Of a stretch of 46,728 nucleotides of DNA, positions 1 through 7,095 are shown in pieces. The notes under the pieces are model-generated. The model was not told where the DNA came from. It ran no database searches and saw only the letters and a list, made by a program, of their open reading frames with translations. Location of the stretch: positions 36,481-83,208 of the forward strand of contig RQSC01001147.1 in the NCBI GenBank assembly GCA_013416795.1, written 5' to 3'. The stretch comes from Prasinococcaceae sp. CCMP 1430 (taxonomy: Eukaryota; Plantae; Prasinodermophyta). How positions within the stretch are numbered: position 1 is the first letter of the stretch; each line of letters begins with the position of its first letter. The translations under genes and the position numbers were made by a program.

Positions 1-477
1 CGGCGCCGAGCGCTGGCGGCGGCCGCCGACGGCGGCAAGGCGGCGGGCGGCAAGAAGCGCGGGCGGGGCTTCGGTGCCTCCTCGGACCCGGTGCAGGATG
101 CGCTCATCTCGGGTCTGAGCGAGGTCGCGCAGACGTCGGGGCGGACCCCGAGCACCCCGACGACGGTGCTCGGCGCGGCCACGGACGACGAGGCCAAGTG
201 GGCCGAGCTCGACGCCAAGGTGAACGAGTACCCCATCCTGCGGAGCTTCAAGGCCATCGGCACGGGCGGCGACGACTTCGTGGCGGCGATGGGCGCGGCG
301 GCCGCCGGCGCGCTGGGCCGAGACGCGCTCGCCGCCGAGCAGCTGAGCGCGCGCCCGTCCTCCGGCGGCAAGTACATCGCCGTCACCGTCGGGCCGCTGC
401 GCATCGAGTCGTCGGAGCAGCTGCAGGCAGTGTACAAGGCCATGCAGGCGGACGGCCGCATGAAGTACTTCCTGTAG
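1..477 (+). CDS. DUF493/YbeD-like small protein, probably plastid-targeted; 5' partial
   Basis: Frame is open from base 1 to TAG at 475-477. The segment EYPILRSFKAIG...RPSSGGKYIAVTVG...SEQLQAVYKAM...MKYFL follows the DUF493 pattern. GC3 is strongly biased. Confidence 0.75.
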   Translation, partial: RRRALAAAADGGKAAGGKKRGRGFGASSDPVQDALISGLSEVAQTSGRTPSTPTTVLGAATDDEAKWAELDAKVNEYPILRSFKAIGTGGDDFVAAMGAAAAGALGRDALAAEQLSARPSSGGKYIAVTVGPLRIESSEQLQAVYKAMQADGRMKYFL

Positions 478-1528: not shown

Positions 1529-1546
1529 AAAAAAAAGGCCAAAAAA
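1529..1546 (-). terminator. RNA polymerase III oligo-T terminator of the tRNA-Arg gene
   Basis: T6 (1546-1541) and T8 (1536-1529) on the minus strand, about 25 nt downstream of the predicted discriminator base. Confidence 0.7.
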
Positions 1547-1570: not shown

Positions 1571-1720
1571 CGTCAACGACGGGAATTTCGTCTCGAACCC
1601 CCGATGCACATCCGGGTGGTGTCGTGAAAACCTCGAAGTCGCGCGGCGCCGCGCGCGCGGCGCCGGTCCCGCAATCCCCGGATTAGAAGTCCGATGCCTT
1701 GTCCATTAGGCCACGAAGAC
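1571..1720 (-). tRNA. tRNA-Arg(UCU) with two non-canonical T-loop introns; exons 1720-1668, 1637-1632, 1584-1571
   Basis: Spliced 73-mer GTCTTCGTGGCCTAATGGACAAGGCATCGGACTTCTAATCCGGGGATTGCGGG|TTCGAG|TCCCGTCGTTGACG. D-stem GCCT/AGGC; anticodon stem TCGGA/TCCGG with TCT at 1687-1685; T-stem GCGGG/CCCGT; acceptor stem 5/7 paired; G73. BHB-like motifs at both introns and oligo-T downstream. Confidence 0.85.
1590..1599 (-). promoter_or_regulatory. B-box-like element GGTTCGAGAC inside tRNA intron 2
   Basis: Matches the Pol III B-box consensus GTTCRANNC. The gene's native B-box is split by the introns. Confidence 0.55.
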
Positions 1721-2882: not shown

Positions 2883-3250
2883 ACGAGGTCCGGCATGCGT
2901 CCATCCAAACCCGGCACTTACAGTCCCATCCCGACACTCCGCGGCGCCACCGCCACGGGACCCCCTTCCCCCCGTCCGACCAGCGGAGAGGATCAGGCCG
3001 TCCTGCGCTTCCTGGCGCCGCCCTTGGCGCTGTTCATGAGCTGCGCGTGCGTCGGTGCCATGCTGCGCGGCGGAATGTACGGCAGCTGCGGCATGTTCGC
3101 GCGGCGGCGGATGAGCTCCGGCCCGCGCTCCTTCAGCTCGGCGACTGTCCTCGTGCCCAGCACACGAAAACACACACTAAACACTAAGACGCGCTCGACT
3201 CCCCCGCCAAACCGAACCCCCCACCGCAGCGGCCACCGCCGTCCGTCATC

Positions 3251-5806
3251 ATGGGGCGCAACAGCAACAAGCGCCGCAAGGGCGGCCAGCGCACGCAGAA
3301 GCGCGACTTCAAGAAGGGCGGCGGCGGCCGCGAGGGCGAGGCGAAGCGCAGGCGGTACGACGCCGACCCCGCGCAGCGCGCGGCCAGCGCGCAGGCGTCG
3401 GAGGCGTTCATCGAGTACTACAAGGCGCAGAACATCGTGGGCGAGGCCGACGGCGAGTGGGACGCCCTCGTGGCGTGCATGAAGACGCCGCTCCCGGCGT
3501 CCTTCCGCATCAACGGCAGCGGGCAGTTCGCCGCGGGCGTCAAGGCGGGCTTCGAGAGGCGCTTCTCGGGGCTCATGGGCGCCAGCGCCGACGGCGACGA
3601 GGGCACCAACAGCTACACGGACGACGCCGGCGAGCGCGTGGTGGTGCCGCCGCCGCGCGCGCTGCCCTGGTACCCCGGCGGCCTCGCGTGGCAGGTCAAC
3701 CTCAGCCGCCACCAGCTGCGCCGCCTGCCGCAGTTCGCCGAGCTGCACGAGTACATCAAGCGCGAGAACGAGGTGGGCACCATCACGCGGCAGGAGGCGG
3801 TGTCCATGATACCGCCCCTGCTGCTGGACGTCCAGCCGCACCACAACGTGCTCGACATGTGCGCCGCGCCGGGCTCCAAGACCTTCCAGCTCCTCGAGAA
3901 GCTCCACGCGGGCGAGGGCGAGCCCACGGGCATCGTGGTGGCCAACGACGTCAACGTGCAGCGCTGCCACCTGCTCATCCACCAGACGAAGCGCGTGAAC
4001 AGCGCCAACCTGCTGGTGACGCAGCACGAGGCGCAGTCCTTCCCCATGGTGGGGCGCCGCTGGGTGGAGGGCCGCCCCGACGACTCGGAGGCCGTGCGCT
4101 TCGACCGCGTGCTGTGCGACGTGCCGTGCTCGGGCGACGGCACCATCCGCAAGGCGCCCGACATCTGGCGCAAGTGGAACGTCGCGAGCGCCAACGGCCT
4201 CCACCGCCTGCAGACGCGCATCGCGCAGCGCGGCGCGCGCCTCCTGCGCGTGGGCGGGCGCCTGGTGTACTCCACGTGCTCGCTGAACCCCATCGAGAAC
4301 GAGGCGGTGGTCGCCGAGCTGCTGCGCTCCTCCAAGGGCGCGCTCAAGCTGCTCGACGTGTCCGCCGAGCTCCCCGAGCTGCGGCGCAACCCGGGCGTCG
4401 GCGAGTGGCGCGTCAAGGGGCGCGACCGGTGGTACGGCACCCTCGCCGACGTCGACCACGACCGCGACCGCATGGTCAGCGCCAGCTTCTTCCCGCCCAA
4501 GGACTACTACGACCCGGACGTGTACGACGAGGCGCTCGCGCAGGCCAAGGCCGCCGCCGAGGAGGAGGCGAAGGAGAAGGCGGAGGAGGCGGAGGACCAG
4601 GCGCAGCAGCAGAAGCGCTCGCCAGAGGACATCGCGATGGAGACCGCGCGCGCCGTGGCGGCCAGGCAGCACGCGGAGCTCCCGCTGCCGCTGGAGCGCT
4701 GCATGCGCCTGCTGCCGCACCACCAGGACACCGGCGGCTTCTTCGTGGCGGTGATGGAGAAGGTGGCCGAGTGGCCCAAGGACGTGCGGAGGAAGATCGG
4801 CGCGAAGCAGGCCATCGCCGCGCTGAGGGGCGAGGCCGACCCGGCGGAGCTCGCGCGCGTCGCCGCGGAGGAGGAGCGGAGGCAGGCCAAGGAGAGCGCC
4901 GAGAAGGACGCCAGGATCGCGGCGAAGAGGAAGGCCGAGGAGGAGGAAGCGGCGGCGGCGGCGGCGGCCGAGGGCGGCGCGGGGGGGGCGCAGGAGGGCG
5001 CCGCGGCCGGCGCGGCCGACGGGGGCAAGTACAAGGAGAAGCGGCAGGGGCACCACAAGGGCATCGACCCGCTGATCATGTACAATGACGCGGCGGTGAA
5101 CGCCAGCATACGCGCGTTCTACGGCCTGGCGGAGGGCGCGTTCCCGATGGAGAGCCAGCTGCTGGTGCGCTCGATAGGCGGGCTGCCCAAGCGCATCTAC
5201 TACGTGTCCAAGCCCGTGGCGGATCTGATCGCGCTCAACGAGAAGACGCACGAGCTGAAGGTGGTGGTGGTGGGCGTCAAGATGTTCGAGCGCCAGGAGG
5301 TCAAGGACGGCAGCGTGGCGTGCGCGTACCGGCTCGCGCAGGAGGGGCTCAGCTGGCTGGAGGGCGTCATGACCAAGCAGGTGCTGCGTCTCACCCTGGC
5401 CGAGATGCACACGATGCTCGCCACGCGCTCGCAGCCGCGCCACTACTTCGAGGGCGCCACGGGCGAGGCGTTGGACGCCCTCTCCAAGGGCTGCTGCGTC
5501 ATCCGCCTGCGCGACGGGGAGGCGCTGCCCGAGGGCACCGTCGCAGGCGCCGCGCCCGTGTCCGTCCCCTGCTGGAAGGGCCCCGCCAGCCTGAACCTCC
5601 TCATCACCTCCACCGACGCGCACGTCATCCTCGAGCAGCTGGGCGGCAAGAAGGAGAGCGAGCCCAAGGTGGACAAGCCCGCCGAGGCTGCGGCGGCCAA
5701 GGTCGAGGTCGAAGGTGAGGGGCCCGCCCAGGCGAAGGCCGAGGGGCCCGCCCAGGCGAAGGCCGAAGGAGAGGGCGCGCCCGCGCCGATGGAGGCTGAG
5801 GCGTAG
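3251..5806 (+). CDS. NSUN2: tRNA (cytosine-5)-methyltransferase, NSUN2/Trm4 family; intronless, 851 aa
   Basis: Motifs VLDMCAAPGSKT, VVANDV, FDRVLCDVPCSGDGT, GGRLVYSTCSLNPIENEAVV and LPHHQDTGGFFVAV. Confidence 0.95.
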   Translation: MGRNSNKRRKGGQRTQKRDFKKGGGGREGEAKRRRYDADPAQRAASAQASEAFIEYYKAQNIVGEADGEWDALVACMKTPLPASFRINGSGQFAAGVKAGFERRFSGLMGASADGDEGTNSYTDDAGERVVVPPPRALPWYPGGLAWQVNLSRHQLRRLPQFAELHEYIKRENEVGTITRQEAVSMIPPLLLDVQPHHNVLDMCAAPGSKTFQLLEKLHAGEGEPTGIVVANDVNVQRCHLLIHQTKRVNSANLLVTQHEAQSFPMVGRRWVEGRPDDSEAVRFDRVLCDVPCSGDGTIRKAPDIWRKWNVASANGLHRLQTRIAQRGARLLRVGGRLVYSTCSLNPIENEAVVAELLRSSKGALKLLDVSAELPELRRNPGVGEWRVKGRDRWYGTLADVDHDRDRMVSASFFPPKDYYDPDVYDEALAQAKAAAEEEAKEKAEEAEDQAQQQKRSPEDIAMETARAVAARQHAELPLPLERCMRLLPHHQDTGGFFVAVMEKVAEWPKDVRRKIGAKQAIAALRGEADPAELARVAAEEERRQAKESAEKDARIAAKRKAEEEEAAAAAAAEGGAGGAQEGAAAGAADGGKYKEKRQGHHKGIDPLIMYNDAAVNASIRAFYGLAEGAFPMESQLLVRSIGGLPKRIYYVSKPVADLIALNEKTHELKVVVVGVKMFERQEVKDGSVACAYRLAQEGLSWLEGVMTKQVLRLTLAEMHTMLATRSQPRHYFEGATGEALDALSKGCCVIRLRDGEALPEGTVAGAAPVSVPCWKGPASLNLLITSTDAHVILEQLGGKKESEPKVDKPAEAAAAKVEVEGEGPAQAKAEGPAQAKAEGEGAPAPMEAEA

Positions 5807-5955: not shown

Positions 5956-7095
5956 CTAGCTCGCCGCCCGGCCGTGCTTCTGCAGCTGCTCGGCGTCGAT
6001 CTGCGCGAGTGCGGGCAGCGCGTCCACCAGCCGCTGGTGGTACACCGGCGAGGCGCCCGCGGGCGTGCGCTCGAGGTACACAGTGGACAGCGTCGGCAGC
6101 GACGCGCGCAGCGCGTCCGCGAGGCCCTCCAGCGCGCTCACGGGCACCTTGGTGTCGTTGAGCCAGAGGTCCTCCAGCTGTGGCAGATCCGCGAGGCCGT
6201 CGAGGCTGCCGATGGGGTTGTCCGCGGCGTCGAGCAGCAGCACGGGCAGGCCGTCGAGCCCTTCGAGCCGCTCGACTCCGTTCTGGCTCACGCTGAGCTC
6301 CTCGAGCGGCGCCCCGCAGCCGGCGCCCGCGCCCTCCGCCGGGCCGAGCGCGGCGAGCGCGGCCGTGCTCGTCAGGCGATTCGCTTGCAGGCTCAGGCGG
6401 CGCAGACGGGGCATCGCGCGCAGCACGTCAGGGTCCGCCACGGTGATCTTGTTTGAGCCGAGCCAGAGCTCCTCGAGCGCGCCGAGGCCCTCCATGCCCT
6501 CCATGGTGCGCAGCCGGTTCGAGCCCAGCTCGAGCACGCGCAGCGACGCGCGATTCGCGATGCCCTCGGCCCTCCTGATCTTGTTCTTGGCCGCGTAGAG
6601 CTCGGCCAGGCACGGCGGGGCGCGCGCGAGCGGCTCGAGCGAGCGTATCCCATTGTATGAGATGTCGAGGTGCGTCAAGTGCCGCAGCGCGTCGAGCGGC
6701 GGGCACTCGCTCAGCAGGTTGTCGCGCAGCACGAGCGTCGTGATGCCCGCGCACGCGGCCGCCGCCGTCACGCGTGCGGCGCCCTCCAGGAGATTCTTGC
6801 GCAGGGAGAGCGAGGCGAGGCGTGCGCCCGCGTCGGCGTCTTCCAGCACACACGCAATCGCGCTCTCGTCGAGGCGGTTCCCGGTGAGCTCGAGCTCCTC
6901 CACGCCGGCGGACACGCGGACGCCCGCCAGCGACGGCAACTGGCGGTAGCCGAGGTCGATGACGCCGTCGAGCACCTCGTACTCAACAGCGTGCTCGGCG
7001 TCCGACGCTTCCGCCTGGAGGCCGGGCGCCGCCGCGGGCGGCGCCCTCTCCCCCAGCGGCTCGCCGCCCGAGCCCGCGCCCACCTCGCCGTCCAT
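5956..7095 (-). CDS. Leucine-rich repeat protein, Sds22/PPP1R7-like (379 aa)
   Basis: ATG at 7095. Tandem SDS22-type LRRs (LTHLDISYNGIRSL, LRVLELGSNRLRTM, LEELWLGSNKI) and a cap LYLE.TP..Y...L...LP.L.QID-like segment. Confidence 0.8.
   Translation of the reverse strand: MDGEVGAGSGGEPLGERAPPAAAPGLQAEASDAEHAVEYEVLDGVIDLGYRQLPSLAGVRVSAGVEELELTGNRLDESAIACVLEDADAGARLASLSLRKNLLEGAARVTAAAACAGITTLVLRDNLLSECPPLDALRHLTHLDISYNGIRSLEPLARAPPCLAELYAAKNKIRRAEGIANRASLRVLELGSNRLRTMEGMEGLGALEELWLGSNKITVADPDVLRAMPRLRRLSLQANRLTSTAALAALGPAEGAGAGCGAPLEELSVSQNGVERLEGLDGLPVLLLDAADNPIGSLDGLADLPQLEDLWLNDTKVPVSALEGLADALRASLPTLSTVYLERTPAGASPVYHQRLVDALPALAQIDAEQLQKHGRAAS

Follow-up and report, generated by a model that had tools for sequence, protein, structure and literature searches.

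The stretch of DNA analysed here (the window; 46,728 nt of contig RQSC01001147.1 of Prasinococcaceae sp. CCMP 1430) harbours a sequence that is best explained as a nuclear tRNA-Arg(UCU) gene, read on the minus strand with G1 at position 1720, of a very GC-rich green alga (local GC content, 64-74%, in agreement with the 69.8% published for Prasinoderma coloniale). The reading of this gene that we tentatively prefer, at a little less than an even chance of being right in full, is that two BHB introns of the archaeal type interrupt its T-loop, one on either side of a 6-nt exon, and that the favoured order of processing is intron 1 first. On the modelled folds, this order would be a kinetic and thermodynamic preference and not an absolute requirement. 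The features of the gene are given in Table 1.

Table 1. Positions in the window of the exons, introns and pairing elements of the split tRNA-Arg(UCU) gene
Feature	Position	Strand	Content and role
Exon 1	1668..1720	minus	tRNA positions 1-53: acceptor 5' strand, D arm, anticodon arm (UCU), variable loop, T-stem 5' strand GCGGG
Intron 1 (at 53/54, 30 nt)	1638..1667	minus	9-bp GC hairpin (inner helix h'), then CGCG (central helix 3' strand), AC
Intron 1 central helix, 5' strand (U48-G51)	1670..1673	minus	partner 1640-1643 (C78-G81)
Intron 1 central helix, 3' strand (CGCG)	1640..1643	minus	then bulge A82 C83 and, past the cut, U84
Micro-exon UUCGAG (6 nt)	1632..1637	minus	tRNA positions 54-59
Intron 2 (at 59/60, 47 nt)	1585..1631	minus	G, UUUU (h' 5' strand), inner hairpin, G-run and second UUCGAG, GAGA, CGAA, AU
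Intron 2 central helix, 5' strand (U54-G57; i84-87)	1634..1637	minus	partner 1587-1590 (CGAA)
Intron 2 central helix, 3' strand (CGAA)	1587..1590	minus	then bulge A U and, past the cut, U60
G-run and second UUCGAG in intron 2	1592..1602 (UUCGAG 1597..1592)	minus	resembles a B-box; competes for CGAA
Exon 3	1571..1584	minus	tRNA positions 60-73: U60, T-stem 3' strand CCCGU, acceptor 3' strand CGUUGAC, G73
T-stem 3' strand (C61-U65)	1579..1583	minus	with 1668-1672 forms outer helix h of the intron 2 BHB; rivals the intron 1 central helix
Run of six T	1541..1546	minus	24 nt past G73; likely Pol III terminator, judged from the sequence

When both inserts were deleted in a script, a 73-nt sequence was obtained that ARAGORN at default settings reports as tRNA-Arg(tct). 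On the unspliced DNA, no tRNA was detected in the whole window by ARAGORN or by Rfam at gathering score. With Rfam in E-value mode the unspliced gene reached 26.2 bits against a threshold of 29, and it did so only because the intron hairpin serves as a false T arm; the alignment to the Rfam tRNA model covers exon 1 positions 1-48. Exon 1 has the make-up of a regular tRNA 5' portion: GUCUUCG is its acceptor strand, U8 is present, the D arm contains G18 G19 and A20, and the variable loop is GGAUU. The Rfam scan in E-value mode revealed no other tRNA in the whole window. The sequence GGTTCGAGCCC at 6516 lies inside coding sequence and was set aside, and spurious sub-threshold miRNA matches in Rfam result from a long imperfect (CA)n / CACACGCGTGTA microsatellite at 1120-1305. 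Three DNA-type runs from this organism match the region 1400-1984 with zero differences; although the window may itself derive from these runs, their agreement argues that the odd features of the gene are not assembly errors. An assembly gap (N run) is situated at 2005-2788, which shows up in the composition profile as an artefactual stretch of low GC.

The hexamer UUCGAG is present twice in the gene, at i84-89 and i124-129 counted from G1; in shuffles of the 77 intron letters, it arises by chance with a frequency of 0.0095. We enumerated all one- or two-segment deletions that give the mature sequence, and five parses were obtained, namely introns of 30 + 47 nt, and introns of 70 + 7 nt in four forms that slide over GGG. 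Among the five, 30 + 47 is the sole parse with 4/4 central helices at both introns. The G-run and the second UUCGAG together read GGUUCGAGAC (1590-1602). With the genuine B-box region interrupted by the introns, no other sequence of the gene is as B-box-like as this one, which is situated about 104 nt from the A-box. On the minus strand, a 12-nt direct repeat, AUUGCGGG(A/U)CCG, was also observed at 1558-1569 and 1664-1675, with 11 of the 12 positions alike; one copy consists of tRNA positions 46-53 and the start of intron 1, and the other stands in the 3' trailer right after G73. A third, weaker copy (AUCGGGGG) precedes the second UUCGAG. To judge from their sequences, these copies hint that local duplications contributed to the history of the inserts.

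In the 30 + 47 parse, each of the four cut sites is located exactly 2 nt 3' of a strand of a 4-bp helix, as the BHB rule demands; the geometry of the canonical 37/38 intron, reconstructed from the anticodon-intron pairing rule, agrees with cuts 2 nt 3' of the helix. The central helix of intron 1 is formed by U48 G49 C50 G51 and C78 G79 C80 G81 (4/4 pairs, one of them G·U). Its cuts fall between G53 and A54 in the bulge G52 G53 A54 (C55), and between C83 and U84 in the bulge A82 C83 U84. The 5' bulge is thus 4 nt long (GGAC), not 3, and the 3' bulge (ACU) is partly closed by the pair U47-A82 in RNAfold (P 0.40). An outer helix h is absent in the canonical register, and h' is the 9-bp GC hairpin, which forms with P 0.99 in every fold; because h is absent while h' is present, intron 1 is of the relaxed HBh' type. 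The central helix of intron 2, UUCG/CGAA, consists of 4/4 Watson-Crick pairs with a modelled probability of at most 0.08, CGAA being its 3' strand. The inner helix, of 4 bp, is UUUU/GAGA, in which GAGA is the 3' strand of h', and the cuts fall after G59 in the bulge A58 G59 G and before U60 in the bulge A U U60. For intron 2, the T-stem GCGGG/CCCGU can act as outer helix h only once G53 has been joined to U54. We shuffled the sequence 200,000 times per intron and scored the shuffles with a 4/4 central helix and an inner helix of at least 4 bp; these made up 0.42% for intron 1 and 0.17% for intron 2. Both BHB motifs are beyond chance.

The two motifs are coupled in several ways. As stated in the original prediction, the outer helix of intron 2 is the T-stem (G49-G53 / C61-U65), the 5' strand of which continues into U54-G57 only after G53-U54 joining; in the precursor, U84 is preceded by A82 and C83, which stand opposite C62 and C61, and pairing between them is impossible. 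It had also been noted that the central helix of intron 1 occupies nt 48-51, in competition with the T-stem, and we located the overlap at nt 49-51. Moreover, U84 is common to both motifs, being the third bulge base of the 3' site of intron 1 and a member of the first pair of the central helix of intron 2. The idea that the two BHBs are partly mutually exclusive holds as far as physical overlap is concerned, and with the cloverleaf core enforced the modelled precursor is split between the intron 1 central helix (P 0.44) and the T-stem (P 0.48), but this does not amount to a lock. The word "obligatory", which had been applied to the order of splicing, goes too far. The central helix, the inner helix and both bulges of intron 2 can form before intron 1 is removed, and prior removal of intron 1 is needed only for the outer helix of intron 2, the rest of the motif being there already. 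[quoted passage not shown] On the models, the direction proposed, 53/54 before 59/60, appears reasonable and its strength overstated.

Folding was performed with RNAfold on ensembles in which the cloverleaf core was enforced or left free, and the intermediates were built in scripts from the window sequence. Because nearest-neighbour models penalise bulges and take no account of the enzyme, the modelled figures are to be taken as indications only. The central helix of intron 1 had P 0.82 in the unconstrained precursor, and in nascent prefixes from nt 90 onward it had P about 0.99, before the 3' strand of the T-stem exists. Folding of the precursor and of each single-intron intermediate had been suggested as a check on the cascade. 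If intron 2 goes first, with the core enforced the T arm closes (P 0.95) and the intron 1 central helix falls to P 0.006, and without constraint it drops from 0.82 to 0.37. The BHB of intron 2 is scarcely populated (P 0.08 in the precursor and 0.009 after removal of intron 1), because CGAA prefers the local second copy of UUCG (P 0.65 with intron 1 removed). This second UUCGAG copy is a competitor that the original prediction did not mention, and on the modelled ensembles it weakens the cascade. After removal of intron 1, the conformer with the strict BHB and that with the local hairpin differ little in energy (-25.0 versus -25.4 kcal/mol).

For the precursor, three conformers were evaluated: one with both central helices and the T-stem absent (-42.6 kcal/mol), one with the T-stem closed round intron 1 as a branch together with the intron 2 helices (-44.7 kcal/mol), and one with the T-stem and the local hairpin (-47.7 kcal/mol). 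The modelled precursor conformers are only 1-3 kcal/mol apart, and the unconstrained minimum-energy folds are not tRNA-like. The energies that the motifs add to the core in the precursor are -24.9 kcal/mol for intron 1 and -5.3 kcal/mol for intron 2. By RT-PCR, processing in C. merolae was found to be ordered, the BHB with the lower free energy being taken out first (PMC3728597); by this rule, intron 1 would be the first to leave here.

Whereas the sequence geometry and the modelled energies were obtained directly, the steps of processing are what we infer from them. The abutting motifs, with U84 shared and with competing partners for nt 49-51, would permit only one complete motif at a time, and this would call for two separate cut-and-join rounds; four simultaneous cuts would probably leave the UUCGAG hexamer held by just four pairs to the excised intron. 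The first step would be the removal of intron 1, whose central helix and GC hairpin are predicted to be the most stable local fold and whose motif would be complete before transcription of the T-stem 3' strand. In the second step, joining of G53 to U54 would let the T-stem close and would turn the relaxed HBh' motif of intron 2 into a full hBHBh'. We favour the removal of intron 1 first because the intron 2 motif is strict only afterwards, because the reverse route is predicted to hide the central helix of intron 1 and because, in terms of timing, this helix already forms in nascent prefixes. A further reason is that the motif of intron 1 is far more stable, and C. merolae processes the more stable motif first (PMC3728597).

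Sequence reads and relatives of the gene were also considered. In run X1, an rRNA-depleted seawater metatranscriptome, a 261-nt contig was found that lies on 1679-1939 with 97.7% identity. It spans tRNA positions 1-42 and 219 nt upstream, and its six differences are all upstream of the tRNA. This contig may be DNA carry-over. It indicates that a close relative exists in the wild, and that either the region yields a long transcript or the library contained DNA. No joints at the introns were found in the read contigs, among which the contig on 1679-1939, ending at tRNA position 42, is the sole one from an RNA library; the two joints listed in the reads come from GC-rich repeats in DNA-type contigs. 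A metagenome scan with a 5'-half pattern, which was overly general, returned at least 120 DNA stretches. No relative of the split gene was present among the matches listed (at least 120), almost all of which are ordinary uninterrupted tRNA-Arg(UCU) sequences. One of them (L070:594-690, on a metagenome contig of 42% GC) is an uninterrupted tRNA-Arg(UCU) with a fully paired acceptor stem and shares with the split gene the anticodon arm, the variable loop, the T-stem 5' strand and GCGGGUUCGA; this identity shows the expected look of the joined T arm.

The neighbouring genes were used in the same search. A DUF493/YbeD-like gene (PF04359; one source names it 'putative lipoic acid-binding regulatory protein'), of which positions 1-477 (plus strand) contain the 3' end, has its closest relative, 98% identical, on a 771-nt ENA contig too short to reach the tRNA locus. 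An intron-less gene for an 851-aa tRNA cytosine-C5 methyltransferase of the NSUN2/Trm4 type (PF01189, PF25376, PF25378) occupies 3251-5806 (plus strand), with relatives at 99% (L121, a TARA metagenome scaffold) and 68% (L122 and L123, marine contigs). The tRNA-Arg sequence is absent from the L121, L122 and L123 contigs, and an orthologue of the split gene was not recovered by way of the neighbours. Between the assembly gap and the NSUN2-like gene there is a short coding exon on the minus strand (2994-3155) ending ...HAQLMNSAKGGARKRRTA-stop.

Other explanations of the locus have to be weighed against the one that we prefer. Both introns might be of the relaxed HBh' type in the precursor and be removed in either order by an endonuclease of broad specificity, the overlap barring only simultaneous binding. 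Such a process without an enforced order agrees with the observation that the 4/4 central helix, the 4-bp inner helix and both bulges of intron 2 are ready in the precursor, with the small energy differences between the evaluated conformers and with the ability of the T-stem to form round intron 1 (P 0.48). It also has parallels in C. merolae, which splices introns with HBh' motifs and even some whose motifs lack a central helix, and in whose tRNA-Ile(UAU) two of the three introns leave in either order (PMC3728597). We nevertheless consider it rather unlikely, given the gap of about 20 kcal/mol between the motif energies and the prediction that the central helix of intron 1 would be hidden (P 0.006) if intron 2 were out first. 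In a quite different division of the gene, the second UUCGAG (1597..1592) would be the exon, with a 70-nt intron (54-123) before it and a 7-nt intron (130-136) after it. The mature sequence would be identical to that of 30 + 47. The 7-nt intron would sit in the local hairpin (UUCG/CGAA with an AGA triloop), which is better populated (P 0.36 for the free precursor, 0.65 with intron 1 removed), and since G121-G123 can be paired with C61-C63 as a stand-in for the T-stem, the 7-nt intron could go first. However, this stand-in helix has a modelled probability of about 0, and the 5' site would fall in a 3-nt hairpin loop instead of a bulge. The central helix of the 70-nt intron is 3/4 with a G·G mismatch, unlike both central helices in 30 + 47, and this intron has neither an outer nor an inner helix and a motif energy of +3.5 kcal/mol. 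Removal of the 7-nt piece followed by a cut at the 30-nt BHB would, according to a pairing check by hand, leave a 40-nt remnant without a usable motif. The 70 + 7 division was demoted to a weak rival on account of the imperfect central helix of its long intron, and we regard it as very improbable.

It is also conceivable that the locus represents a tRNA-like sequence in decay or without function, whose inserts are not productively spliced or whose product is unused. In the middle of the acceptor stem, U4·U69 and U5·U68 form two neighbouring U·U mismatches, and no better 3' acceptor strand (CGAAGAC-like) was seen by eye in the intron, the trailer or the leader. Of about 175 Arg codons in neighbouring ORFs, 3 are AGA; the codon is very rare nearby, which suggests that the demand for tRNA-Arg(UCU) is low, though above zero, and that selection on this tRNA may be weak. 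The stop of the RNA-library coverage at tRNA position 42, in one contig that is perhaps DNA carry-over, and the almost uniformly uninterrupted state of the tRNA-Arg(UCU) loci from metagenomes (at least 120) point the same way. Against decay stand the bases U8, A14, G18 G19, A21, U33, G53 U54 U55 C56 A58 and C61, which are known as universally conserved in tRNAs and are all present here, as is A20, which we take to be an arginine identity element. The gene also has an A-box-like sequence and an oligo-T terminator, and its four BHB cut sites are intact, with chance expectations of 0.4% and 0.2%. We therefore hold a dead gene to be unlikely, and the preferred reading remains that of a T-loop split by two BHB introns, with intron 1 leaving first.

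Several properties of the locus have counterparts in known systems. The canonical hBHBh' motif, as Marck & Grosjean 2003 is summarised in PMC3728597 and PMC4090602, has a 4-bp central helix with flanking bulges, and cleavage takes place 2 nt into each. The central helix and the cut position conform to that description at all four sites here, whereas intron 1 differs from it in its 4-nt 5' bulge and in lacking the outer helix (HBh' type), and intron 2 would be strict only after intron 1 has been removed. In multi-intron pre-tRNAs of Crenarchaeota, the BHB of the last intron forms only after the others have been processed (Sugahara 2008; Tocchini-Valentini 2009, both as related in PMC3728597). 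According to the same account, the Crenarchaeota (Thermoproteales) resemble the present case in having several BHB/BHL introns per pre-tRNA at non-canonical sites, and in that completion of a motif hinges on the earlier removal of another intron, with successive rounds of cutting and joining. They differ from it, as far as that account describes them, in that here the gene is in a eukaryotic nuclear genome, the introns are adjacent and not nested, and of the second motif only the outer helix requires the first splicing event, the central and inner helices preexisting. The nuclear tRNA genes of C. merolae contain ectopic BHB introns, as many as three per gene and in part located in the T-loop, and these introns are described by the authors as folding independently and not being nested (PMC3728597). 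The gene found here is likewise a nuclear tRNA gene with ectopic BHB introns in the T-loop, but its motifs share a base, compete for nt 49-51 and flank a 6-nt exon, and it belongs to a green lineage (Prasinodermophyta).

Our literature search found no report of such introns for Prasinodermophyta. A 2026 review of tRNA genes in photosynthetic eukaryotes records non-canonical introns only in red algae and nucleomorphs, and permuted genes in Mamiellales; it does not mention Prasinoderma, and the genome paper of Prasinoderma coloniale does not treat nuclear tRNAs. The principle of dependent BHB formation and ordered processing is already known from archaea and red algae. What is new here is the coupling of two adjacent introns on either side of a 6-nt exon, in a nuclear gene from the green lineage. 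It might further be the first nuclear pre-tRNA with structurally coupled BHB introns, in which the coupling protects the 6-nt exon and sets 53/54 before 59/60, an archaeal-style cascade in the green plant lineage; we consider this broader claim possible but somewhat unlikely.

Without an enforced order, the locus would be a further split tRNA gene. Should the order prove real, it would provide a small eukaryotic test case of how the tRNA splicing endonuclease deals with adjacent, competing BHBs and a 6-nt exon, and conformation-dependent splicing would be extended from Crenarchaeota to a deep-branching green alga.
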